From: Rhodosorus marinus CCMP1338
Lineage: Eukaryota; Plantae; Rhodophyta
Length of the DNA: 64,000 bases
NCBI GenBank assembly: GCA_029953675.1
Contig: JAMWBK010000009.1
Location: forward strand, 248,001 to 312,000
Direction of reading: 5' to 3'
The position numbers were made by a program, and so were the translations under genes. Below are positions 8,400 to 62,253 of this stretch, piece after piece (within the stretch, counting starts at the first letter, position 1; each line of letters opens with the position of its first letter). Below the pieces are notes generated by a model, which saw only the letters and a program-made list of their open reading frames with translations, had not been told where the DNA came from and ran no database searches.

Positions 8400-8712
8400 G
8401 TGCTGCTGGTCGGACGAAAGGAAGTAGAAGTCGGCGGTGACGAGAACATCGGTGTTCTCCAAATCCGCGCAATGGAAAATCCGGGAACGACGAAGGAAGT
8501 GAGCGCAGCCGAGAAGGAGCTACGGAGAGAGTTCGATGAGCTCTTCGTCGATACCTTGGCGAAACTACCGCCACATCGGGAGCAGGACGCAGCAATTGAA
8601 ACGGGCGGCGCGAAGCCGGTGTTCAAGTGCCCGTACCGACTATCGCCATTGGAGCGGCGAGAGTTGAAGACTCAGCTGGAGGACCTCATCGAGAAAGGCT
8701 TCATAACCCCTT
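8400..8712 (+). mobile_element. Ty3/gypsy pol fragment (protease-RT linker)
   Basis: LPPHREQDAAIETGGAKPVFKCPYRLSPLERRELKTQLEDLIEKGFITPS; the frame breaks at the start of RT. Confidence 0.9.
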
Positions 8713-8806
8713 CTCGGCTGCGCTCACTTCCTTCGTCGTTCCCGGATTTTCCATTGCGCGGATTTGGAGAACACCGATGTTCTCGTCACCGCCAACTGCT
8801 ACTTCC
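8420..8806. repeat. 98-bp inverted duplication (fold-back) of gypsy sequence
   Basis: 8709-8806 is the reverse complement of 8420-8517 with 2 mismatches; spacer 191 bp. Confidence 0.95.
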
Positions 8807-8809
8807 GCT

Positions 8810-9480
8810 CTTGTGTGGGCAGAGCTACCCCTTTCTTTGCTCTACACCTATCCAACTACCATGGTAACCCTAATTATACCGTTCTTCGACCCGGCCTGGT
8901 ACGCCGGCTTCGCTCTGCCTTTCCTTTTCGTCTATCCCTAAAGCAGAATGTAATTACTCTGCCTACCACGCTGAATAGAGAAAGGGGGTTGATCCCGCAA
9001 AACAACCAAACAGTCAACACTGCCCGTCGGGAGCTACCCCCACACTATCTATTGCTCACTAAGCCCCAGTTGTACACGCAATTCTTGAAGGTTCATTACC
9101 CATGGGCTTTGTAAAAATATCCGCTAGCATTTCTCCAGTCGATATGTATCGCAAGTCCACGCCCGGCGTTATACACCGATCCCTCACGTAGTGATAGTTC
9201 ACTCTAATATGCGGAGACTTTTTCTTGTCATCTCCTTTTGCCCATCTAACGCAGGAGCTGTTGTCGGCCCATATGCTTGTACGGGTTTCCTCACCGTGCA
9301 TCCTAGTTCTTCCATGAACTCTTCCAACCAACGTTGAAGCACCATCATGTCTCCATGAGCCTGGTACTCTGCATCGGTGGTTGATTGAGCGACCGAACGC
9401 CGCTTCTTCAACCTCGCGACAATCGGGGCGTCGTTCGGTTTTATCACAATACCTGTCGTACTCTTCCTGTCCGTGTCCGC
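8810..9480 (-). mobile_element. Ty1/copia 3' fragment: frameshifted RNase H plus possible partial LTR
   Basis: DRKSTTG...SVAQSTTDAEY...WLEEFMEELG, then IWADNSS...HIRVNYHYVRD...MLADIFTKP. A purine-rich tract is followed by TGTTGA at 9019, a possible LTR start. Confidence 0.85.
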
Positions 9481-9481
9481 G

Positions 9482-10335
9482 ATAGCGGCTCCTATCGCCA
9501 GACTGCTTAAGAAGGAAGTACCTTTCCAGATTACGGAGGAGATCTTGCAGAGCTTTGAGCAACTGAAGTCTGCCGTGACCTCGGAACCGGTCCTCACCTT
9601 ACCTCGGTTAAATCGTGGCGGGTTTGAGGTCACAACCGATGCCTCTGGGGAAGGGATCGGAGGGGTTTTGATCCGGGGAGGACGTCCGGTGGCTTTCACA
9701 TCGCGTAAATTGCAAGGTGCAGAGCTTACGCACCCCACGCATGAGAAGAGATGCTAGCAGTAGTAGACTGCTTCAAGATATGGGGCCATCAATCCCCCCA
9801 TTACCTGGAGGGATTGAAGACGGTGGTCTGCACCGATAGTACCGCTGTAACATACTTCAACGAAGTGGCTCAGCCATCGCGAAGGGTGACGCGGTTCCTC
9901 GCGAAACTCGACTCGGCGTTCGTCGAGTATGAGGTACGACACATTCCAGGTAAGACGAATCTGGTCGCAGACGCATTGTCGCGGGCGGAGCGGGAGACTG
10001 CCGTAGTTCAGTTGGTGTCGATCGACCAACTGGAGGGGTATATCCGGACAAGACGAATACCTGCAGGCGTCGAAAAGTCAGAAGAGGCCCTACTACGAAC
10101 GGAGGTGGGGAACCTAAGGAAGACGAGGCAACAGCCGGCTAATTAAGGACATGGATGGGCGACTCGTGACCTGGGTGAAGGACTGTTGGATGTGATTAAT
10201 AACGTCCATACTACCCTCTGGCACGTAGCGGCGAAACCGCTATACGGTAGTTGCGGCAGCGGTTTTGGTGGCATACTGTGCGCCGAGATGTCTTCAACGC
10301 GGCGAGGCGCTGTAAACGTTGCCCGGTGAACCAAC
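9482..10335 (+). mobile_element. Ty3/gypsy pol fragment (RT connection, RNase H, integrase HHCC finger), decayed
   Basis: IAAPIARLLKK...TDASGEGIGGVL...VAFTSRKL, TDS...HIPGKTNLVADALSR, then H.T..H...LRQRFWWHTVRRDV...CKRC, with frameshifts and stops. Confidence 0.9.
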
Positions 10336-12290: not shown

Positions 12291-15200
12291 TTACGAAATT
12301 CTGGTTGCGATGGTCAATCCGTCGCGAATAGGGAGCATCAGCTGCTCTGTGCGCGGATCGTTCCGAACATGCACGTTGAACTCGTGCATTTTCCTCGCCA
12401 ACCGACCTGCCTCGTGAATTGAGTTTGTCCTCCTCCTCCTTAACTGCTGGGACAATGTTGAATCGTCGCTGTCCTCGTCATGAAGGTATGGTACCCCTCC
12501 CTGTCATGTGAGGATAATCAGACCTCTCCGATCAGTTTTTGATGTGATCGGTAGCATTCTCGGTGGCGTGTGTGCAAACCTTGAAAAGAACGTTGTCAAT
12601 GATCATAACCCCGCCGATCCGCAAGATATTTGATTCCAAAATCTTGTCATAGTACGACTTATATTTTGCCTTGTTCGCGTCCAAAAAAACAACATCAAAG
12701 GGTTCCGCCTTCGACTCCACGAGCTCCTCCAGAACGTCATCCGCAGCTGTCAGTCTAACGCTGATCTTATTCGAAATCGTGCTTCTGTCGTAGAAGGCCT
12801 GTGCGATCTGTTGGAACAGGATAATAGGGTTGGCAAGCACTTTCGTAAGCAGCAATGCTTCGGTGACGTGATGGGACCCATGTGAGAAGTTCGCTACCTC
12901 TATCGCTTTGGGATCAATGTCACAAGTAAGCAGTTCTCCATGGTCGGAAAGTCCAGAAGCCATCCACAGGGACGAATAGCCAGTAAAAGTCCCAAGCTCC
13001 AGCACCCGCGAGCTCTGCGTCATGCTTATAATGTTTTTCAAAAGCCGTCCGACGACTGGACCACACACCTGAAGTCATGTCAGAAGCCTGTTCAGAGACA
13101 TTCAGGAGCTAACATGTTTCATCCTTGTCCAATAGACCTACCATGTGCGCTCGAGAAGGGAAGGCTTCCTGCGTAGCCTCTTGCAAGTCTCTCATCAGCA
13201 ATGGTTCAGACGTGCTGTACTCTCGTGAGTACTCGTCGAGGAGGTCAGAGTGTTCATCGCGGTCAGCGCGATTGGAGGAGACTGAGTGTGTCTCGGATTG
13301 AGAGCTGTCTGCAGTGAGACACTGTAGACAATCTTCTGAGCAGCAGCCTTTCAGTTGAGCCGCGCACTCCGGGCATTGAACGAAGTGCCGATCGGCAAAT
13401 GGTCTTCCACATCTGCGGGACAAGAAAACCTGTGTGTTAATACATGAAGCCACCATAAACAGAGGTCGTATTCCACGGTGATCAAAGTACCTTTCATTAG
13501 CGCAGTCGGTCTGCGTGTCGCATTTTGCTCCGCAATTCAAACACTGCGTAAGGACATCGCCAGTAACTCTCTCTCCCAGCCGTAGATCAAAAACATAATT
13601 TACGCCCCTAAATTGTGACTCGAGACCTTCCTCTCGGACGAACTTTGAATAAGCTACAATCCCGCCCTCCAACCGATCCTGTTTGAGGAAACGCCACCAC
13701 TGAAAATTAGCGCTCCTTCTTCCCGCAAAAAGAAACTGTTTTCAGCGAGTCAAAAATGCAGCAGCGTCTTCGACGGTAAACTTACCACGTTCTTGAATCC
13801 CATCTCTTGCTCGAGGAAAGCCCCGACTTTGACGCAACGAATCCCACCAGTGCAATACGTCATGATCCTTTTATCCTTGCTCGTTCCTTCGAGCTCTTTT
13901 CGAAGCCAATCCCAGGACTCTCTGAACGTGGAAGTATCCAGAGCTCTTGCGCTTTCAAACTTCCCGACCTATATCACCAGAGAACGGATAGAGCGTTTTG
14001 TCCGTTCTCAGCTGTGAGCAGAAGCAACTTCTCCAGTGGCTACTGAGTGCCTACCTGACTCTCGTACTTGTTTCTGCAGTCCAACAAAATCACGTCATCA
14101 TTGGACTCTAGCTTTTGGTGCCACTCTTCCGGTGATACGGCAGTTCCATTGTTGCTCCTACGATTCCAGTCGGCAAGCAGAAAGCGCAAAATCATGGAAT
14201 TAGTTCGCTGCTCTTGTGAGCTGTATATGTCTAATGAATCCCTCTCTCAAACAAGTACCAATCCAAAGGCTTTTCTAGACCATCTGAAAGGACTTGAGGA
14301 CGAACTTTGATCCTCAAGTCAACGAACGGTGTGTCGCTGAGAGCGACCTTGCGGTCGACGTTCAGAAAAGCCCCACGAATCTGGCGGCCGCCGCAGCAAG
14401 GAAACATCGCTCTTGTCAGGACGGTGAATAGAGGCGATTAACCCTTCACATATGCTCACCTCTCTGGGAACCCAGCGATTCGCCCACTCCGCTATCTCAG
14501 CGAGCTCGTCTCCTCTTGCAGAAGGATCGTCCGCCAGCGATAGCTCAAGGCAACTGAGGAGGTTGCTTGGCACACAAAGCTGAGCATTTATCCCTTCTTT
14601 AGCGATGTAAACTCTGCCCTTCACCCCCAGAGCAGACAGTACTCTTCTCGACCTGTTCATAACAAACTCGGGCTGTTCTATGTCCACAAACCTGTAGAAA
14701 GAGAGGGCCTGCTGACCATAAACGATCAAAATTCTAAGTAGGCTGGCCAGGAAAATTGAGCTAAGGGTTTAGAGGACGAAACTACCGTAACGTGCTCATC
14801 CACCTGCTCCTTCAAGGATTTCAGAAGATCTGGCTCCGGAACGTGATCAGCCTCAGGTAGGATCGGCATTTTCAGAGGCTCTAGAGCTAGCATGAGCTGA
14901 TCACCAGCTTCTTCTGCTGCGTCTCGAGCTCTCATGAGGTCCGTATCCGTCTCCAATACGTGCTTGGTATGCAACAGCTGGAACGACTCCTCGTCTGGCA
15001 ACAGTATAAATTTCGGGTGGAACGACAGAACGGGGAACAGGCGGATCATCTGCTGCAGAACCTGTACATAGGTCATCCAGGAATACCAATTTGTCCCATA
15101 AATTTTTGTGATGATTAACGTCAACACGTTGCGTGCCGTTGCGCATAGCACGAGCAGTTACCTGACGCTTGAACTCCCGCAGCGAGTGAGAACATTCCTT

Positions 15201-15568
15201 GTCGATGAAAACCCGAACTAATTTCAGCTTCGGCGACAGTCCCAGAGGTTTCCATACTTCATAAGCCACTGAAATCTTCACTGGAATTTTCCTGTTCAAA
15301 GAAGAGAAAAGGAATCAGCAAGCAGACCCGTCAAGGAGTCATGATCACGCGCATCCCAGCCAACTCTTTGTGCTCACTCAGTATGTTTCAATTCATCCCT
15401 AATCTGCTCGGAGACCTCTCTAAAGCGTTTCGCTGTCGATTTTCTCCTTGACCTAGCATTGTCTCTGGATCCCTCAGCCAGGGACCCTTTCACAACCAAC
15501 CTCCGACTGCACACATGACTTTTCCATTTGTGACAAACAATCCCATTCCCAAACACGAAACCTTCCAT
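12291..15568 (-). CDS. trhO: TrhO/YceA (UPF0176 rhodanese-like tRNA U34 hydroxylase) fused to a C-terminal family-3 SAM O-methyltransferase; probable plastid transit peptide
   Basis: ALSFYRF, KGRVYIAKEGINAQ, LLDCRNKYES, YCTGGIRC, LEGGI, YVFD.R and a Cys cluster, then ELGTFTGYS, FLDANK, IIDNVLF and LPIRDGLT. Starts MEGFVFG. Multiple GT-AG introns. Confidence 0.85.
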
Positions 15569-15939
15569 ATCGCCTACTCTCAATGTAAATAAAAAAAAAT
15601 TGACTTCCAAGTGAGTCCAATCGCTCTCCGAGCACATACACATCCCCTCCCTCATCCCAATTCCCCCTCACCAAGCGTCCGCATCACTTTAATGAAAAAC
15701 CCCTGTCATCGCCTTTGCAAATTTTGACGAAACTCGTTGACGACCGGTCGCCCCCTTTTTCCATTAATTTTCAAAGGCCAAAAATCTCTCTAAATCACCG
15801 CCAAATGTTCGAATGTTATCTCCTGCATCGAGTTTCCCGTCGAATGGAAACTTAAAATATGGAAGCTTTTATGAACCTTTGCGCTTTTTTAGGAGAATAT
15901 CTGGTTGGACCTAAATGATTGAACGTAGTCATTATCATG

Positions 15940-18342: not shown

Positions 18343-18861
18343 TCACTGGGCAAATAAGCTCCGCTGGCTTGTCTTCGCGATGCTGCTGTGCTGGGGAATG
18401 ATTGGATACGGAGAGCTCTTCCACATATCAATTTCCTCGAAAAGCAGCTTCATCTCGATCTTGCCCACGCTCTGCATGTCCGCATCCCGTAGAGTATGTA
18501 GGCCCTTTATCTTCTTTTTTGTCCGCAATTGACTCATATTCACACAAATAATCCCAAGGAAAATATCGCGCCCGAAGGCTACCTTCTCCCACAAGGCCAG
18601 GCTAATCTTGTCCACTTCTCCACACATCATATAGTCCATCTTCCTCTCGTACACTGGGTCCTCACCCTTCTTGGCTTTGGTGGATCCAATAGACTGTCCG
18701 TCAACCTTGACCTCAATATAAGTGCTTCCACGTGTTGTGGTCGGTAGGAGACCTTTCCCCCGCACAATCCGCACATGCAGATGCCCGCTAACACCCACCA
18801 TCCCTGGTCTCCCCGCTTGACAACTAACCATCTCACCCGCCTGCCCTCGCCACTTGCTCAT
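18343..18861 (-). CDS. C2-domain protein
   Basis: GHLHVRIVRGKGL...YIEVKV...STKAKKGEDPVY...LALWEK...DIFLG; start codon uncertain. Confidence 0.8.
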   Translation of the reverse strand: MSKWRGQAGEMVSCQAGRPGMVGVSGHLHVRIVRGKGLLPTTTRGSTYIEVKVDGQSIGSTKAKKGEDPVYERKMDYMMCGEVDKISLALWEKVAFGRDIFLGIICVNMSQLRTKKKIKGLHTLRDADMQSVGKIEMKLLFEEIDMWKSSPYPIIPQHSSIAKTSQRSLFAQ

Positions 18862-20919
18862 CGCCCTCTCCGCTTCATGCTCATGTACTTCTGTTCTCCC
18901 AGCGGCCGTCGACTTTATAAAAACAACTATCGGCAGAGTCCTCCAAGCAAAATCTGGCACGGGAAACTCGAAACCCTCCACCTCCCAAGGTGCAAATCCA
19001 GTCCTCGCAACATTGAAAAAAGTACAATTTCGCAAAAGATTTTTTCTTCAAAAGTAAGATAGCACTGAACAGCGCAGACTCCGTCAAAATCCCAAAAATG
19101 CATGTGTACCAATCTACCAGTTGACCTCTCTCAGCACCACTCCAAACGATCATTCCGTGACTACCCCTCGAACCTCATCTACTCGAAACCAACCCACCCC
19201 CCCCCCTTTTGTGTCTGAACATTTTCGCTTCAATTTATCCCGGAAAATGCCCCCGTGTAAGCAATTGAAGACGAAACAAAACTCCTCACGATATTATCCA
19301 CTTTTCAGTTTATTTCGCTGGAGACAAAATTTGGCCAATTTTCCCCCCCCCCATATTCCGGAGCTCATTTCAAAAGGAAACCAAAAAAAGCAAGACACAA
19401 TCTCTTTCTCCAGCCCATCGACCCTCATTGAATAAGAAATTAACAGCTTTCCAGATTCTATCCCCCCCTAAAACCCCTCCCCCCCCCACCCCGCTATGAA
19501 ATCTGTTCCGTTTTCCTCTCATTCTTCACAACTCGCTAAGCAAGGGGCACCATTCTGCATATTCATGTGCTACGAAAATTCCCCCTGATCAATTTTTTTT
19601 TCGTCCAAAGAATTTCGCCTGATCCTGAGGAGGGGGGTGGTGGGGGAATTACACTGAAAATGTCCAGAAATATATAAGAATTAAGATTTTTCCGTACTTA
19701 CAAATAATTTATGCAGCATGGGCTCTCTTCGATGAAGGAAGCCCATGCTTCTAACATCCCCCGCCCACACCCCTCCCTCGGAAAACAATTCTCTTTTAAG
19801 AAAACGCAAAAAAGAAAATCATATTCTATCGAGAAAAACTTTGAAGGAGAATATAGTAATAAACAAGAAGAGCGTTTCGGAGAAGATACGTCAGTATTTC
19901 TATTCATATTTACTTTTTTATCTGATAATGGGCTGGTGCGATTCTGCCAAAACGTGTCCAAGGGGTTATCCACAAATTGGGACGTACTAAAGACTAAAAC
20001 TTCCAAAGTTTTTGCAAGGGTTGCACTGTCCCTAAACGGATTTTTGCACGCTTTGGTGACGGGGCCCAGTTTGGATTTGTGATATCACCCGCTTACTTAT
20101 AGGCTCATTTTTTTTAGTGTTTTCCAACTGTTTTTTCCTGACAATAATCCGAACGAGCGCGTGAAAAAGCGAGGACATGCGAAGAGTAATCGTATTTGCG
20201 GGATGATAAATATCAGAAATCGTTGATTTTTCTTGATGCGCGATCTAGACTCTGGCCAGCTCTATTTCAAGGGCGCCTAATCCTCCAGAAGCAGCGTTCC
20301 AAGTCTGAGACATATCGCCGGATGTATATACGGTATCATACGCTTAATACCGTCCCACGGCGCAATAAAACAAATATTTTATGCTCAAAAACTTCTAGTG
20401 CTTCTCAACTACGACGTATTCACTTCCAAGCGGATATTTTGTTGCCCAATTTTAGTGCCGATCTCGTAATTTAAGAGCGTTGATATATTCCGAGATCGTC
20501 CACCAAAATTAGCATATTGGTAAATCGAGGCGTCCCGCATTCCCATCGAGTATTTTTCGAGGATTCACTTCATCTGTTAGTTGAGCAAGCCATATACTCG
20601 TAGTATTAAAAGTAGAAGAAAAAAACTCCCCTCCGCACCGTTCATTGGACAATAGCTGCAGACAAAAACTTAATTGCACACTATTTCCATGGATCTTTGG
20701 GAAAAGTCCAAAATCAAACCATTTTGCTCCAATAATCACGCTGTACTCCGGGGAAAGAGGCTCACGAGTCTAGCTCACTAAATATCTACAGCCAATCATC
20801 TACCGGGCAACCGGCATTGAATTCTTTTTTTTCCTATTTTTAATTTCCGGCGCGCCTAGCTCAAGGATGTGAGATCTGACGTAATCCAGGCAGGACAAAC
20901 TTCACGAATATATTTCGAT

Positions 20920-31965: not shown

Positions 31966-34414
31966 ATGCGTGGTGGGCGATTTCTACAGGTCCTGCTTTT
32001 GTGGTACGTGCACTTGCTTACCTCCTATTTGCGGGTTTCAGACTGGGCGATCAATGTCTGGCTAGCAGATTAGGGCTAAGATGACCGACTTTTTCGATGT
32101 GCCTGTAGGCTCTGGATTTGTCTAGGTAGAGGCAGTCCTGTAGACGTTCAAAAGATATCAATAGATATGCCAGGGCGGCAAGCAGACGTGCAGACCAGCG
32201 TTGAATCTTTTGCGATCGAAGTTCCAGATGTTTTTGAGCGTATTACTCCATACTCGATTTCGCTGGACAAGGAACATGTCCTAGTTGGAGTCAAATACGA
32301 GGAGGCGGCTGGGGGCGGTCGCGCAACGCTGTTTAAGAAAGTCGGGGATAGGAAGTGGGTTGAAGTTCTTCAAGTTTTCCATCCTGACTCCCTTAAGGAC
32401 TTCGGGGACTCGGTGGATTTGGACGTGGAAAAGGGGTGGATATTCGTAGGACTTGAGAAGCGTTTGGGAACTGTGCTAGAACCAGGGCACCAATGTAATG
32501 GTAGTTTTGATAAGTGTGGTCACGTAAGTCTCGTTCCTATTTGCCATTTCGTGTGCTATACTGGACAAACAGATCGTGTGTCTCACCCCTCTTATTGCTT
32601 GCGAATTGTTTAGGCTTACTTCTTCAAGTTTAATATCCTGGATTCGGGCGAGTATGAGGTCGTTGAGACAAAGAGATTGGATGGCAGCGACTCTGCAGAG
32701 CAGTTCGCGTTTCACATTGACCACTACGGCAACAAGGTTGTGGTGACAACGAGACATGGATTTGAGCTCTATGACATGGAATCGGGCTCACCAGAGCTAG
32801 AATATACTTTCAACGCACTTGATAAAGCTCCCGAAGCCTGGGATAACAATAGAGCCACGATCGATGTCACCGACTGCGAAATGAACGCAGACTACATACT
32901 CTGCGGGATTGCCACAAAGTCGACCAAGTACGTCCTCGTGACTCACCACTCATTAACTCTTGGCTTCGTTGTTTTGACTGTTGCGCTCTGTCCTTTCCGC
33001 AGACGGGATGGCGAGAAGTTTCCCCCAACTTACATAGCTGATCCTTGGCTATCGCTGCATAAATGGAATGAGATGTCGCAGAAGTACGAGTACGAAATGA
33101 ACATTCTATACAGAGACATGTTCCCGAATGGAGATCATTGGCATGATATGATCAGGGTGCATGTGGGCGTAGACAAGGAAACCAACTTGTTCGTAGCCGG
33201 GTTCCCGTCCTCTGGATATGAACAATATACATTGTTCGATGAAAATGGAAACCCGCAATATTACGGTGACGGTAACGATGGTTACCCGTACAGGGTTGGC
33301 GAGGTATTTTTCGACGCCGGGAGAGTTGTGATGCTTAGTGTCGATGAGAACGCCGAGAAAGGATATACATATCAAGAAGTAATAGCGCCCGTGGGATCAG
33401 GGGACGCGGAAGATAGTTTTGGCTTCACAGGATCGTGCAGCGGTGGGAGCTGTCTTGTATGCAGCGACGATTTAGATCAACCGCGTTGCCACATCGTAGA
33501 GAAAGATGACTCCGGCAATTGGATAATTGAAAAGAGACTGGAGAAGCAGCTCGACCCGAAAAATCAATCGATCGGGGACAGCTTTGGTTTTGAGGCTGTA
33601 CTGCGCAATGGGACCGCCGTGATTACAGATTCTCAGTTCATCAATATTTACGAAGACGTTAGCGAGGTCAACACGCTGGCTCCAGAAGTATTGGAACCCG
33701 AGGTAAGTTGGGTTGAATGATTCTGCCCTCTTAGAATTGCGAGGAACGGCCTTCTTAGTTCTTCTTGCTCGCTTTTGCTAGGGATCATCGGCACTCTGCT
33801 TTGCTAGAGGTTCCAACGTTTTCGTTGAGGGCGAAACACCGGGAGAAGCTGTGGAGTCGAAAATTGAGAATATTTCTGTTGGTGATAGAATTGGGTCAGT
33901 GGACGAGAGTGGAAACTTTGTTCTTAGCGAGGTTTTCCTCGTTCAACACGTGTCGGACATGACGGAGTACGATGTCCGTCACATTACATATGACGACAAG
34001 AGTGGTTTGTCGCGAACGCTGGTAGTTACACCTGGACATTTGCTTGTCAGTGGCCGCACTGAGCGGGGGCTCAGTTACGTGACAGCTTCCAAGGTGACTG
34101 CCGGTACCGTCCTCTTCGTTACAGATGGAAAGGGCGCCATGGTGGACGTCTCCGTAACGAGCGTTGACGAGAGCAAGTCTAGAGTCGTAAACCTTCACAC
34201 AATGTCGGACCGAATCGTTGTGGAGGGTGTCGTAGCAAGCTGCTTTGCTGAGGTGCCCCTACTTCGCGGCCTTTATTTCTGGGAATGGATCATGTCCGTT
34301 TTAATTAGACCAGTGAAGGTCCTGCACAGAATGGGCCTGAGAAAGTTGGCCCAAGCGATGGACGTCTCTGCGAACATGCTTTCAGCTCACATGTTTAGAT
34401 TGTGCAAGGTGTAG
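31966..34414 (+). CDS. Secreted FG-GAP-like beta-propeller protein with C-terminal Hog-type Hint domain
   Basis: Signal peptide MRGGRFLQVLLLWLWICLGRG; FGDSVDL and DSFGF blade repeats. An in-phase intron at 33703-33781 joins to GSSAL|CFARGS...VTPGH...NLHT...IVVEGVVASCF, followed by an amphipathic tail. Confidence 0.85.
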
Positions 34415-36568: not shown

Positions 36569-39070
36569 TCAGGCCACCTGTTCAAGGAGAATCCTGTTAA
36601 TCAGGTCCTTCTTCTTTCCGGTGGTCTGGTATTCCCCGAAACGAAACGACGCACAAAAAGGTGAGTGGGATGCGGGCGTTGGTTTCGACTACTGGAAGTC
36701 CCTATCACGGAAAAGCTACTTACCTTCAGTCCCATTTCCGCCAAAACTTCCTTCAAACGAGGAACCGTCAAGCGCTTCAGAGATTCCTTGTTCTTCAGTT
36801 TCTCAACTTCAACCCCGGCAATTACTGGTAGATTGGATTTCTCCTTCTTCACCGTATCCACCTTCGGCTCCGGTGCTCTCTTAGCGAAGCCTGCAGGCTT
36901 CGTTCCCACGGTTCCCACGGTTTGGACGACGGAATCGATAATGCTCGACCGAGGTTTAACTGGTGCTCCGAGTGGGCTCCTTTTCTGTGCGCTGCTCGCA
37001 CGTACAACCTCCTGCAAACGAGAAGCTAGATTTCAGCTGAACATCTTTGGCTCAATCAAATACTAAATAGAAGCAATGGTTTCCGTCACGCTGTTCATCT
37101 TCCAGCGATTTGTGTGAAAATACCTTCTCTTCAACTATTTTCTGCTCTTGCTTGGTGGGTTTTGCTTCGGTTTCAAGTTTTTGGGCAACAACCTCAGTTT
37201 TTCCTTCGGGAACAGCGTCCTTCGCCTGCTTGATAGGTTGCGCCAGCTTTACCGGTTCAACCTTCTTCTCCTCTTTGACCTTCTGGGCCAGTTTCACTTC
37301 CTGCTTTACCGTCTCAGCCTTCTTCGCCTGGTGCACCTGTTGAGCTAGTTTCACTTCCTGCTTCACCGGCTCAGCTTTCTTCGCCTGCTGTACTGGTTGA
37401 GCTAGTTTCACTTCCTGCTTCACCGGCTCAGCTTTCTTCGCCTGCTGCACTGGTTGGGCTAGTTTCACTTCCTGCTGCACCGGTTGAGCTAGTTTCACTT
37501 CCTGCTTCACAGGCTCAGCTTTCTTCGCCTGCTGCACTGGTTGGGCTAGTTTCACTTCCTGCTGCACCGGTTGAGCTAGTTTCACTTCCTGCTTCACCGG
37601 CTCAGCTTTCTTCGCCTGGTGCACCGGTTGAGCTAGTTTCACTTCCTGCTTCACCGGCTCAGCCTTCTTAGCCTGCTGCACTGGTTGCGCTAGTTTCACT
37701 TCGTCCTTCACCTGCTCAGCCTTCTTCTCCTCTTTGACCTTCTGGGCCAGTTTCACTTCGTGCTTCACGGGCTCAGTCTTCTTGTCCTCCTTGACAGGTT
37801 GCGCCAATCTGACTTCCTGCTTCAAAGGCTCAGCTTTTTTCGCATCCTCAACTGGCTTAGCCAATTTTACTTCCTGCGTCAAAGGCTCAGCTTTTTTCGC
37901 CTCCTCAACTGGTTTAGCCAATTTTACTTCCTGCTTCACGGGCTCAGCTTTTTTCGCCTCCTCAACTGGCTTAGCCAATTTTACTTTCTGCATCACAGGC
38001 TCAGCCTTTTTCTCCTCCTCAACTGGTTTAGCCAATTTTACTTCCGGCTCCACGGGCTCAGCTTTTTTCGCCTCCTCAACTGGTTTAGCCAATTTTACTT
38101 CCTGCTTCACAGGTTCAGCTTTTTTCGCCTCCTCAACTGGTTTAGCCAATTTTACTTCCTGCTTCACAGGCTCAGCCTTCTTCTGGGCTTTGACCGGTTC
38201 AGCCTTCTTAGGCTCAGGTTTCTTTTCTTCGACAGGCATCGCCGTTTTCACCTCCTTCTTCTCATCCGTGATCAACTTTGGCGCTGCACGCTTTTCGCGT
38301 CCCGAACTGGTTTCAGACATAACTGGCTTGGCCACGGGGTTGGTGCTAACTCGGGCCTTAGACGCCGGTGGAGCTTTTGCCTCAACTTTCTTATCCCCAA
38401 CTGCGGGAGCTTTCTTAGAAGCCTTCTCCTTCAAATCGGGGATTGCAGCTGCCTTTGGAGCTGTCGCTGCAGCTCCTCTACGGCCCAGTGCTCTACCCAG
38501 CGGCTTTCTCTTATAATCATAGAAGGATGGGGGCTTCTCCACCTTTCGACTAGAGGTCCTGGGCTTTGGCGCCGTGGAAACTTGTTTCGAATGATAATCG
38601 TAAAAGCTTGGCGGCCTCTCCACAGTTCCTTGAGCGGCTTTCGGCTTTGAAGCTACGGACGTTGATTTCGCCATATATTCATTGACGCTAGCCGGCGTAG
38701 TCTCCAGCTCGTGATGCCCGATCCGTACTGAATCCGGCTCAAGGTCAAAAGAGATTCTCGCTTCTGCCGTTTCTTCTGCGTCGGGCTCAATCTTCAACTT
38801 CTCGAGATCATTGTGGTTCCTAGAAATCCACGACAGATGTGCTGTGCTTCTTCTTGGGACAGTCAGTGAGGTTGCGTTTCCATCTTTCTGGACTGTCTCC
38901 TGACCCAAATACTCCCCTGCGACCCGTTCGCCTTCCATTGTCAACATCGCCAAGTCCATATCAAACATCCTCCATCCATCTTTCATTACGATTCTCCTCC
39001 AGTCCCGGGTTACCGTTACAGCGGAATCCCGCCTGGAAAGAATCCCTCCTAAGCCCAGGAATCCGTACAT
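36569..39070 (-). CDS. Lys/Pro/Ala-rich repeat protein with C-terminal SAP domain; probable plastid transit peptide
   Basis: 672-codon first exon starting MYGFLGLGG, with 19-aa repeats. Spliced SAP motif LTVPRLKEVLAEMGLK|TTGKKKDLINRIL. Confidence 0.8.
37250..38215. repeat. Coding minisatellite, 57-bp unit with 30-bp deletion variants
   Basis: GCTAGTTTCAC recurs at 37344, 37401, 37458 (period 57) and then 37488 (30); the unit encodes KKAEPVKQEVKLA(Q/K)PV(QQ/EE)A. Confidence 0.95.
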
Positions 39071-59786: not shown

Positions 59787-61195
59787 CTATCTTCTTCTGT
59801 GGAGGAGTATCCTAGTCAGGTTCTCAAGGGCTATTCTAGAGCTCGATTCGTCAAATTTGGAAAGCGCCTCTCGAGCCCTGAAGGCATGTTCTTCTGCCAT
59901 TTTTACCGTCTGTTCAACGCCGTTGGATTGCTTTATCTTCTCCAAAGCATATTCGACGTCTCCATCGCGTTGAAATCTAACACCATCACGTACGTTATTG
60001 CTTGTTAGCGTTGGCCATGCTTCCTAGCAAACTGAACAGGCAGAGTCCAACTCACCTCCTCTTTACGTAAGCTTGGAGTTCCGGAAACTCCTTCATAGCG
60101 AACAAAACCGGACCTGTCGAGTTACCAGATCTAAGATCCGCACAGGTAGGCTTTCCAAGCTCCTCTTCAACCGCGGTAATGTCAAGAGCATCGTCTATGA
60201 GCTGGAAACAAAGACCCAGATGTTTTCCAAACTCAAAACCTGCATCACAGATCTGGATTGATGGTTCGCGACAAATATCCATTAAGACAAGGGCACTAAA
60301 TCGTCAAGCTATTAACTATGGTGAGCACCGCGGGAATGCTTACTTCATGCCGCTGGCCTCCTAGCATTAGCACCGCTCGACACGAGTTGGCGATCAACGA
60401 TGCGGTTTTATGGTAAGTCTTCTCCAAATAGACCTTGAAATAGTCCTCCCAACCTGAAGCCTTCGTTGATGATACGTTAATCTGGATAACTTCCCCTCGA
60501 ACCAAATTTTCTATAACCTTTTTATTTGCAGAGAAAAGCGTTCTTCGTTAGCGTTCGTCGATGACGGGTGTGCTTCAGCGTCCCGAGCTGGAAGCGCAGG
60601 CGAGTAGAAGCAATGGCGAAGAAAAGGAATCCCTTTTGGGGCTTACTTGAGCGAGAACAGAGACGACGTCGCAATTATTCAACCTAGCGAGCGCCGCTGA
60701 TGCTCTGGCGAGGACGAAGTCTCCTGCAAGGACCGCGACATGATTTCCCAGCATAGAATTGACTGTCTTCGCACCTCGCCTCGTGTCTGACACGTCGATG
60801 ACGTCATCATGGAGCAGCGATGCTGTGTGAATCATCTCTGTGATTTCGGCCAGTCGTCTCTGAGAAGGAAGCACGATTCCGCCACCCGCAGCACTTGCGA
60901 GGAGAAGCATCGTGGCGGGCCTGAACAACTTCCCACTTCGCTCCAAGAAGTACCTCGCCGCTCGATCCAGAGTAGGCACTCCCGAAATTCTCACCGTCTC
61001 CTGCATCGCCAAACTGATATCCTTTAGCTCCGCTGAAAACACCTGAAACGGATCCAAACCACCACCCTTCACATCATTCAAAGAGGCAAAAACCTTCTCG
61101 CTCTTCTTCGCTTCAACAGATAACGATCTTACCATCAAATTCCTACTCCTCCCCAATCCCAACCTCCCAACCAATAAACCATTCACTCCTGCCAT
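59787..61195 (-). CDS. PDSS1: Long-chain trans-prenyl (solanesyl/decaprenyl) diphosphate synthase, COQ1/PDSS1 type, likely mitochondrial
   Basis: GKLFRP, EMIHTASLLHDDVID..RRG, KTASL and FQLIDDALD...LGKP; Arg-rich presequence. Confidence 0.92.
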
Positions 61196-62253
61196 CCTTG
61201 TCCTCAAAAAGCCTGAGCCTCAGGCAGCTTGTGGTAGTACGTCAACACCGAAAACTCCCTACCAACCCCACTCCTCTCATTCACATACTTTCACTTTGCA
61301 GATTTCTATACTAATCCACTCTTAGCTCGTCAAAAAGTTGCTCGCATCGTTCATCCTTCCAACTGATCTCTGCCCTAAACAACTTTGCCATCCAACGTTT
61401 ACGTCATCACGAGAGTAAACGGGCAATCCATCGCCTGGGGAGGACCAAACTTGTCAATGTCCATTCTACCGTAGGAGGCGGTTAGTAGTTGTCGAGGTCA
61501 TCAGACTGATGTCTCACTAAGAAGAACGATGCACGATGTCGTTTTGGATTCCCTCTCAGTTTTTCTGATGCAAAAAGAGGAATGAATCTTTGCTTTCGGC
61601 AGTCGGGAAAGGGCCACCGTCGGTTATGTTATGCAGAGAATCGGGCATCGGTAATGGCATCGTCTAGACTCGCTTGTGATTGAGTCGTTCCGGTTTCTCG
61701 ATGAGAAGGGAGCTGCTTGGATGAAGAATGCTTGAGTGAGCGCGAGGCTGCACTTTCTGGTCTGTACACGGCTATGTGCTTCGTGCTATGCCGCGTGTAA
61801 CGCCGCATCGTCGTTTTGAAGCGCGTAACATTGCGTCTTCAGTAGTTTAGTGCTCAGAGCAGCTAGTCTGAGCAAAGCGCTTCTCTTGTCTTGATGACAT
61901 TCTATATGTTTTTGGAATGGTGGAACCGCTTACTAGAGTGTGTTGGCTGATGTCGAGGACTCAGATCAGATCTGCTGCTTCAGATAAACTTTCTCCACCA
62001 CCTCTCTTTGGCCTTGGTCTGCCCTGCGTTGTCAATTCTGGAAGCCTTCAAGGTGCTCTCAAAGGGGCCTTGGAAGTTAATGGGAGTGCAGTGATGTCTC
62101 GCCTACGCGGTTGATGTTCCCTCTCAGTTTTGGCAGCTCACAGTTTCCTTTTGGATCTCTCCTCCGTTAAGAAACGTACTGCGGACGGCGTGCCTGAGTT
62201 TGATACGGATGCTCGTTTACTTAAGACCTTAGTCGAGGGTATCGGTTTGATTC

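Follow-up and report, generated by a model that had tools for sequence, protein, structure and literature searches.

A TrhO-O-methyltransferase fusion protein of the red alga Rhodosorus marinus is a candidate plastid enzyme for 5-methoxyuridine formation at the tRNA wobble position

A stretch of 64,000 nucleotides from Rhodosorus marinus CCMP1338 (contig JAMWBK010000009.1, positions 248,001 to 312,000 of the forward strand; hereafter the window, whose own numbering is used throughout) contains a gene in which a TrhO module, related to the bacterial oxygen-dependent tRNA wobble-uridine (U34) 5-hydroxylase, is joined to an O-methyltransferase. Three-frame translation and inspection of the splice sites gave one minus-strand frame, which starts with an ATG at 15568 and ends with a stop codon at 12291. 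These are exactly the outer limits of the original prediction, which was made from the letters of the window alone. The coding sequence has 2322 nt (773 codons and the stop) in 12 exons, and the gene is intact. On the minus strand, exons 1-6 occupy 15568-15378, 15291-15162, 15061-14786, 14708-14460, 14380-14259 and 14157-14055, and exons 7-12 occupy 13968-13786, 13678-13491, 13412-13142, 13068-12898, 12807-12580 and 12500-12291. All 11 introns begin with GT and end with AG, and their lengths range from 73 to 107 nt. The original prediction had described intron 9 correctly (13069-13141, minus strand, 73 nt, GT..AG, phase 0) and had mistaken it for the only intron; two more (12808-12897 and 12501-12579) lie in the methyltransferase part alone.

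The motifs quoted in the original prediction (LSFYRF, EGINAQ, DCRNKYE, YCTGGIRC, the Cys cluster, ELGTFTGYS, DANK and DN) were all found. It had placed the whole TrhO module and the beginning of the methyltransferase within one exon, which proved right for the junction only. The TrhO module is distributed across exons 4-9: LSFYRF, DCRNKYE and YCTGGIRC fall in exons 4, 6 and 7, respectively, and the Cys cluster straddles exons 8 and 9. Exon 9 is the junction exon (13142..13412, minus strand). It encodes the closing stretch of the TrhO Cys cluster (CGRPF...CCSEDC), then an acidic linker formed by residues 510-544 and then the opening helices of the methyltransferase (up to ...PSRAHM), and it reads through from the TrhO C-terminus into the methyltransferase N-terminus with zero stop codons.

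NCBI KAJ8902107.1 ("hypothetical protein NDN08_006515 [Rhodosorus marinus]") matches the 773-aa product at 100% identity. Against the JGI orthologue P0001, the 12-exon model aligned without gaps at 91% identity, and all 11 junctions were collinear. Against the transcriptome-derived R. marinus protein P0002, there was one single-residue gap, which was N-terminal and off the junctions, and the 11 junctions were again collinear. The complete MMETSP transcript open reading frames (ORFs) had the identical domain architecture. Whether the two parts share one transcript had been raised with the original prediction, and the collinearity of the transcriptome-derived orthologues with the fused model indicates that they do. 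The domain architecture foreseen there was also recovered, since Pfam placed UPF0176_N, Rhodanese, Rhodanese_C and Methyltransf_3 in one product. The locus is a single nuclear gene of Rhodosorus marinus encoding one polypeptide. The annotated start is preceded by further in-frame ATGs at 15569-15655 on the minus strand (MREGMCMCSESDW...MEGFV); the orthologues and the NCBI model begin at MEGFV, and a T-rich tract lies just before it.

From the N- to the C-terminus, the protein consists of a disordered presequence, a basic helix with a ubiquitin-like domain, a complete TrhO, a flexible acidic linker and an O-methyltransferase of the Methyltransf_3 family. Structure models were computed with AlphaFold2 on P0001, the 91%-identical orthologue. 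The mean predicted local distance difference test score (pLDDT) of the full-length model was 82. Disorder was limited to three segments, residues 1-36, 518-535 (the interdomain linker) and 705-716, of which the first two had pLDDT below 50.

The TrhO module covers residues 199-509 (13328..14788, minus strand, including introns 4-8) and is made up of UPF0176_N (199-312), Rhodanese (332-429) and the Cys-rich Rhodanese_C (442-509). It scored 189.6 bits with the NCBIfam TrhO equivalog NF001133, for which the cut-off is 170, and was 38% identical to E. coli TrhO (E 1e-70). The top Foldseek match of the full-length P0001 model was B. subtilis TrhO with tRNA-Ala (PDB 9j5o), with a target-normalised template modelling score (TM) of 0.78. 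In E. coli TrhO, C200, T201, G203 and R205 are essential, and the K112A variant barely rescues and the R114A variant fails to rescue the formation of uridine 5-oxyacetic acid at position 34 (cmo5U34) (PMC6599085). The corresponding residues of the Rhodosorus protein are C396, T397, G399, R401, K307 and R309.

The rhodanese active-site loop C396-T397-G398-G399-I400-R401-C402 (13834..13854, minus strand), which corresponds to E. coli C200-C206, was invariant as CTGGIRC in 45/45 fusion proteins, the set used for the residue-conservation counts given here. The basic beta-strand I306-K307-V308-R309-P310-Q311 (14294..14311, minus strand) contains the equivalents of K112 and R114, the proposed tRNA-binding surface of the E. 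coli enzyme; position 307 was Lys or Arg in 45/45, and position 309 was Arg in 44/45 and basic throughout. Judged from its sequence, the TrhO part is complete and retains all residues essential in E. coli TrhO, in agreement with the complete TrhO/UPF0176 module originally predicted. It resembles TrhO/YceA of E. coli and B. subtilis (PDB 9j5o, 4f67) in its three-domain architecture, CTGGIRC loop, K112/R114 equivalents and Cys-rich C-terminal domain. It differs in a 24-residue insertion in UPF0176_N and in its position within a 773-aa protein, with the presequence and the helix/ubiquitin-like domain before it and the methyltransferase after it.

The Methyltransf_3 domain, a class I cation-dependent S-adenosylmethionine (SAM) O-methyltransferase, covers residues 545-772 (12297..13222, minus strand, including introns 9-11; Pfam E 1.3e-46). 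Its SAM motif I reads L594-E595-L596-G597-T598-F599-T600-G601-Y602-S603 (12973..13002, minus strand). The segment F669-L-D671-A-N-K674-A-K-Y (12661..12687, minus strand) holds the metal/SAM ligand D671 and Lys674, which were equated with D133 and K136 of TrmR, the Bacillus O-methyltransferase of 5-hydroxyuridine at tRNA position 34, by their shared position in the family motif, not from a printed alignment. The segment I697-I-D699-N700-V-L-F-K-G705 (12498..12603, minus strand, including intron 11) holds the metal ligands D699 and N700, which align directly to TrmR D159 and N160. E595, G597, D671, K674, D699 and N700 were each invariant in 45/45 fusion proteins, and the SAM and metal motifs are thus intact, as had been predicted.

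The domain also has an inserted basic loop and helix (residues 720-746, LSQQLRRRRTNSIHEAGRLARKMHEFN; 12375..12455, minus strand), which aligns to the B. subtilis TrmR loop K177-R181. In TrmR, R178 and R181 bind the anticodon-stem backbone, and the loop becomes ordered on the anticodon stem-loop (PMC6158493). When the C-terminal third alone was used as query, TrmR was the top PDB match, with R725-R728 and R733 lying over TrmR K177-R181. The loop has 37 residues and 7 Lys/Arg in the fusion, compared with 13-16 residues and 0-4 Lys/Arg in the 44 printed of 80 bacterial homologues, with one exception (24 residues, 6 Lys/Arg). The basic cluster was kept in about 41/45 fusion proteins, and its diatom version is R[KR]NRRARK. 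With TrmR/YrrM (PDB 5zw3, 5zw4), the domain shares the Methyltransf_3 fold, the D-D-N metal triad, the Lys of DxxK and this arginine-rich loop before the last helix (K177-R181 in TrmR, R725-R728 here). The fusion loop exceeds that of TrmR by 16 residues and includes an acidic stretch, and the domain is fused, whereas TrmR is standalone.

Ahead of TrhO, a stretch of about 160 residues (~36-198) was overlooked in the original prediction, which had correctly listed the TrhO and methyltransferase modules. Pfam gave zero matches within residues 1-198. In the alignment, however, the stretch was conserved in red-algal, cryptophyte and ochrophyte orthologues, including those of diatoms. The model of the N-terminal region (pLDDT 88.4, predicted TM score 0.78) showed a long basic alpha-helix (~36-63) followed by a ubiquitin-like beta-grasp domain (~64-172); together they occupy residues 36-172 (14867..15463, minus strand, including introns 1 and 2). 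The Foldseek matches of this model were weak (E 2e-3 to 1e-2, target-normalised TM up to 0.64) and comprised SUMO, the PI3K Ras-binding domain, Atg8 and SAMP1. The basic helix and ubiquitin-like module probably adds tRNA binding or partner binding. In P0093 (Nemacystus decipiens, 1109 aa), TrhO is preceded by a thioredoxin domain (residues 158-249), a hint that a redox partner may be needed for the catalytic cysteine chemistry of TrhO.

Residues 1-35 (MEGFVFGNG...; 15464..15568, minus strand) form the predicted plastid transit peptide, which is disordered with a net charge of +4. In red algae and glaucophytes, import into the plastid depends on a Phe close to the start of the transit peptide (PMC2222254); for complex red plastids, the targeting signal is a signal peptide and then an ASAFAP-type Phe (motif rules PMC4329603, PMC2222254). 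The Rhodosorus protein begins with MEGFVFG. A start of the form M-x(0-6)-F-[VIL]-[PSGFT] was present in 16/22 full-length red-type orthologues as well as in the Rhodosorus protein (for example MAFVFGG, MSSAFVP and MGLSFVP), and the background of this motif inside the same proteins was 1.2%. The red-type Phe start was found in 0/48 non-red orthologues. In 20 of these 48, cryptophytes and ochrophytes included, the N-terminus was strongly hydrophobic and resembled a signal peptide, and many of these had Phe at the predicted point of cleavage (AAA|FAAP, VNA|FIAP, AIA|FSFS, AAA|FVLSP, VEA|FTP). In the non-red models that lack a signal peptide, fewer than 30 residues precede the conserved helix, a sign that these models may be truncated. 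These patterns lend support to the earlier reading of MEGFV as a plastid-type transit peptide, and plastid-type targeting, consistent over several lineages, is plausible.

The same architecture was found in many further red algae, Porphyridium and Agarophyton among them, and in the chromerid Vitrella, the cryptophyte Baffinella, Paulinella micropora and the ochrophytes (diatoms, Triparma, Mallomonas, Phaeothamnion, Ochromonadaceae). Sakai et al. (2019) had reported a yceA-trmR fusion in Phaeodactylum tricornutum, Phytophthora sojae and P. ramorum, which was the clue that identified TrhO, and had suggested xo5U-type (5-oxyuridine) modifications for eukaryotes (PMC6599085). The Rhodosorus gene is a red-algal member of this published fusion family, and the present analysis confirms and refines that report and is not a discovery of the family. 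The claim that the fusion is uncharacterised in eukaryotes accordingly needs qualification: its architecture had been noted in 2019, and our literature search found no experimental study of any eukaryotic member. The domains and their order are the same as in the fusion of Sakai et al., and identity with the diatom orthologues is 31-37% across 74-98% of the length. The Rhodosorus protein differs as a primary-plastid version with a simple Phe-type transit peptide, not a bipartite signal, and the diatom methyltransferase domains have a large additional insertion. No oomycete protein was among the 120 matches listed, and the Phytophthora fusion is taken from Sakai et al. alone.

Matches of 500-570 aa named 'sulfurtransferase/YrrM' were considered as bacterial fusions and rejected; the sequences are N-terminally truncated diatom-type proteins. 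In Paulinella micropora, whose photosynthetic organelle is of independent cyanobacterial origin, the TrhO-Methyltransf_3 fusion is P0110 (915 aa), and the gene may have been acquired from algae. The brown-algal and related TrhO homologues P0095 (Scytosiphon), P0098 (Ectocarpus), P0093 (Nemacystus), P0103 (Tribonema) and P0107 (Chrysoparadoxa) carry a C-terminal tail of about 300 aa. The tails start at the stramenopile linker motif WLxPxPFQ..LN..FD, and Pfam failed to call Methyltransf_3 in them. They read RALAVGLGSGG, LFDVILLGGG and GLVLCDSS where the intact domain has RVLEIGTFTGY, FDLVFIDADK and GLIVVDNVLW. To judge by these motifs, the methyltransferase domain is probably dead or degenerate in the brown-algal relatives.

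Taken together, the protein may be a plastid-imported bifunctional tRNA wobble-uridine enzyme that makes 5-methoxyuridine at position 34 (mo5U34), a statement to which, as a whole, we give a little better than an even chance. Among its parts, TrhO activity is supported best, followed by the plastid location and then by the methylation of 5-hydroxyuridine (ho5U) by the methyltransferase. The domains stand in pathway order, with the hydroxylase N-terminal to the methyltransferase. The retention of the fusion across lineages argues for functional coupling, the same reasoning that led Sakai et al. to TrhO.

In the proposed mechanism, the Phe-type transit peptide of about 35 residues would be removed upon import, and the mature protein would bind plastid-encoded U34 tRNAs that read four-codon (NYN-type) boxes. 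The TrhO module, with O2 and the Cys396 rhodanese loop, would hydroxylate C5 of U34 to give ho5U, and the basic strand with K307 and R309 would assist tRNA binding. The flexible acidic linker may then let the C-terminal O-methyltransferase engage the same anticodon loop, so that the intermediate would be handed over between the domains. The R725-R728 loop and K674 would hold the RNA backbone, Mg2+ on D671, D699 and N700 would position the 5-hydroxyl, and SAM-dependent methylation would give mo5U34. The N-terminal basic helix and ubiquitin-like domain would probably contribute tRNA or partner binding.

Several observations weigh against this interpretation. By sequence, the domain as a whole is nearer to the Coxiella-/Synechocystis-type catechol O-methyltransferases than to Bacillus TrmR. 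In the PDB sequence search, Coxiella 3tr6 (1e-35) and Synechocystis SynOMT 3cbg (3e-31) scored far better than TrmR 5zw3 (8e-16), and SafC, a Leptospira O-methyltransferase and human COMTD1 were among the other best solved relatives. TrmR stood about 39th among the PDB sequence matches and was outside the best 50 Foldseek matches, where members of the O-methyltransferase family reached target-normalised TM of 0.82-0.88. TrmR orthologues have been recognised at about E 1e-41 and more than 40% identity (PMC6158493), and the Rhodosorus domain, at E 8e-16, falls well short of these values. Ryu et al. named R86, R90 and R178 as the RNA-binding arginines specific to TrmR and listed R181 and K136 as additional contacts (PMC6158493). 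R86 and R90 are replaced here by Ile622 and Ala626, with Lys625 adjacent, and two of the three TrmR-specific arginines are thus missing. Across the fusion family, Arg622 was present in 19/45 members and position 626 was basic in none.

A simple TrmR orthology was rejected, because the PDB sequence and Foldseek rankings of TrmR were far below those of the catechol-type enzymes and the basic loop alone was common to the two. The TrmR-family likeness originally proposed therefore holds for the fold, the D-D-N triad, the Lys and the basic loop and fails for descent: by its sequence, the domain carries a TrmR-like RNA-binding feature and yet is not a TrmR orthologue. Its closest overall relatives are Coxiella 3tr6, SynOMT 3cbg, Myxococcus SafC (5lhm/5log) and human COMTD1 (2avd), with E 1e-35 to 5e-25 and target-normalised TM of 0.84-0.87, and their metal and SAM sites are the same as in the fusion. 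The physiological substrates of these catechol-type enzymes are mostly unknown or small molecules. Each of them is a separate protein of about 220 aa, and at the site of the RRRR insertion of the fusion its loop is short and non-basic. The Rhodosorus domain also departs from the CCoAOMT/catechol type in general, which is standalone at about 220-250 aa and acts on catechol, phenylpropanoid or CoA-ester substrates, in being fused to TrhO and in having the RNA-binding-type basic insertion.

The gene neighbourhoods point the same way. Among the 80 bacterial genes most similar to the methyltransferase domain, only 1/80 (Zooshikella, L072) has trhO within its 6-kb flanks, and operon support is absent. 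The seemingly degenerate methyltransferase of the brown algae suggests that the second step is dispensable in some lineages, and the fusion reported in oomycetes, which have no plastid, implies that the function is not plastid-tied everywhere. The targeting evidence comes from motifs, not from a trained predictor. Finally, our literature search turned up no paper that describes ho5U or mo5U in a plastid tRNA, and a review states that xo5U was not detected in Chlamydomonas (PMC8877259).

One alternative is that the same chemistry (U34 to ho5U to mo5U) takes place on mitochondrial tRNAs, in an enzyme located in mitochondria or in both mitochondria and plastids. Dual targeting is frequent among organellar tRNA enzymes. 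The fusion reported in plastid-less Phytophthora would fit such a location, and so would the ochrophyte N-termini of Nitzschia P0043 and Triparma P0039, which resemble Arg/Ser-rich presequences and not signal peptides. However, the red-algal N-termini bear the Phe motif of plastid import, and the longer ochrophyte and cryptophyte models show a clear signal peptide followed by Phe. We consider a mitochondrial or dual location unlikely.

It is about equally improbable, in our estimate, that TrhO hydroxylates U34 while the methyltransferase acts elsewhere, on another RNA position or on a small catechol or phenolic, so that the fusion would serve co-regulation or scaffolding. The in vitro methylation of catechols and hydroxycinnamates by the closest solved relatives agrees with this explanation, as do the missing R86 and R90 in a domain that is not a TrmR orthologue and the bacterial homologues unlinked to trhO. 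Against it stand the conservation of the fusion order over very long evolutionary distances and the TrmR-like basic loop, which is inserted in the fused methyltransferases only; 5-hydroxyuracil would also be chemically suited to Mg2+-dependent O-methylation.

A rhodanese sulfurtransferase joined to a small-molecule O-methyltransferase, with no role in tRNA, is suggested by automatic database names ('predicted sulfurtransferase/O-methyltransferase YrrM') and by the classical activity of the rhodanese fold. We regard it as very unlikely, since the protein passes the curated TrhO equivalog model, keeps all TrhO-essential residues and has TrhO bound to tRNA as its top structural match, and E. coli TrhO has been shown biochemically to be a hydroxylase (PMC6599085). 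That adjacent trhO-like and O-methyltransferase genes were wrongly merged in the gene model has nothing in its favour beyond the general risk of read-through in intron-rich DNA and is practically negligible, given a stop-free junction exon that codes for both domain ends, complete MMETSP transcript ORFs with the fused architecture and an NCBI annotation identical to the model.

For the reading of a plastid mo5U34 enzyme, the context of plastid tRNA modification is of interest. Wobble modifications of the xo5U type are regarded as bacterial, and plastids are usually said to read four-codon boxes via unmodified U34 ("superwobbling"). If the reading is true, eukaryotes would have their first demonstrated xo5U modification. 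According to a review (PMC8877259), U34 bears a modification of unknown identity in chloroplast tRNA-Pro, -Ala and -Val, and possibly in -Ser and -Thr; in bacteria, TrhO and TrmR act on precisely these tRNAs, and mo5U would be a candidate for the modification in tRNA-Pro, -Ala and -Val. A preprint on Arabidopsis chloroplast tRNAs leaves ho5U and mo5U unmentioned, and a Plasmodium study lists ho5U merely as possibly expected from the apicoplast. On the other hand, mo5U is present in Synechocystis RNA, and a coconut survey lists ho5U together with a chloroplast-predicted TrhO homologue. None of the Synechocystis, chloroplast-review and coconut sources covers red algae.

A plastid-targeted fusion in red algae and the descendants of their plastids would offer a concrete enzyme with a concrete predicted product, mo5U34. 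The fuller version of this proposal, in which the protein installs mo5U at the plastid tRNA wobble position, accounts for the chloroplast U34 modification as its candidate identity and carries a eukaryote-specific tRNA-binding or regulatory module at its N-terminus, is more tentative, and we place it slightly below an even chance. The details added here to the published family are the helix and ubiquitin-like domain, the TrmR-like basic insertion in a catechol-type O-methyltransferase, the coherent targeting signals across lineages and the probably degenerate methyltransferase domain of the brown algae.

In the rest of the window, no tRNA genes were found. Retroelement-like ORF fragments on both strands are clustered at 8400-10150, just downstream of the gene, where the local GC content reaches 0.535. 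They include an RT_RNaseH match at 9751-10146 (plus strand), below the Pfam gathering cut-off, and gypsy- and copia-like ORFs at 8400-8867 (plus strand) and 9059-9738 (minus strand), which were judged by eye only. At 32677-34414 (plus strand), a 347-aa ORF without a family match is followed by a Hint (hedgehog/intein-type) module at 33851-34414 (Pfam E 7e-15), and these ORFs may together form a secreted or autoprocessing Hint-domain protein. A 672-aa ORF at 37052-39070 (minus strand) is for the most part a tandem array of Lys/Glu/Pro/Val-rich units, each about 19 aa long (KKAEPVKQEVKLAQPVQQA...), with zero Pfam matches and strong local GC and AT skew. An exon encoding a C2 domain lies at 18343-19035 on the minus strand (Pfam E 3.5e-11). 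At 60575-61207, also on the minus strand, there is a polyprenyl diphosphate synthase exon with the LLHDDVID motif and a presequence-like N-terminal stretch (Pfam E 1e-30).

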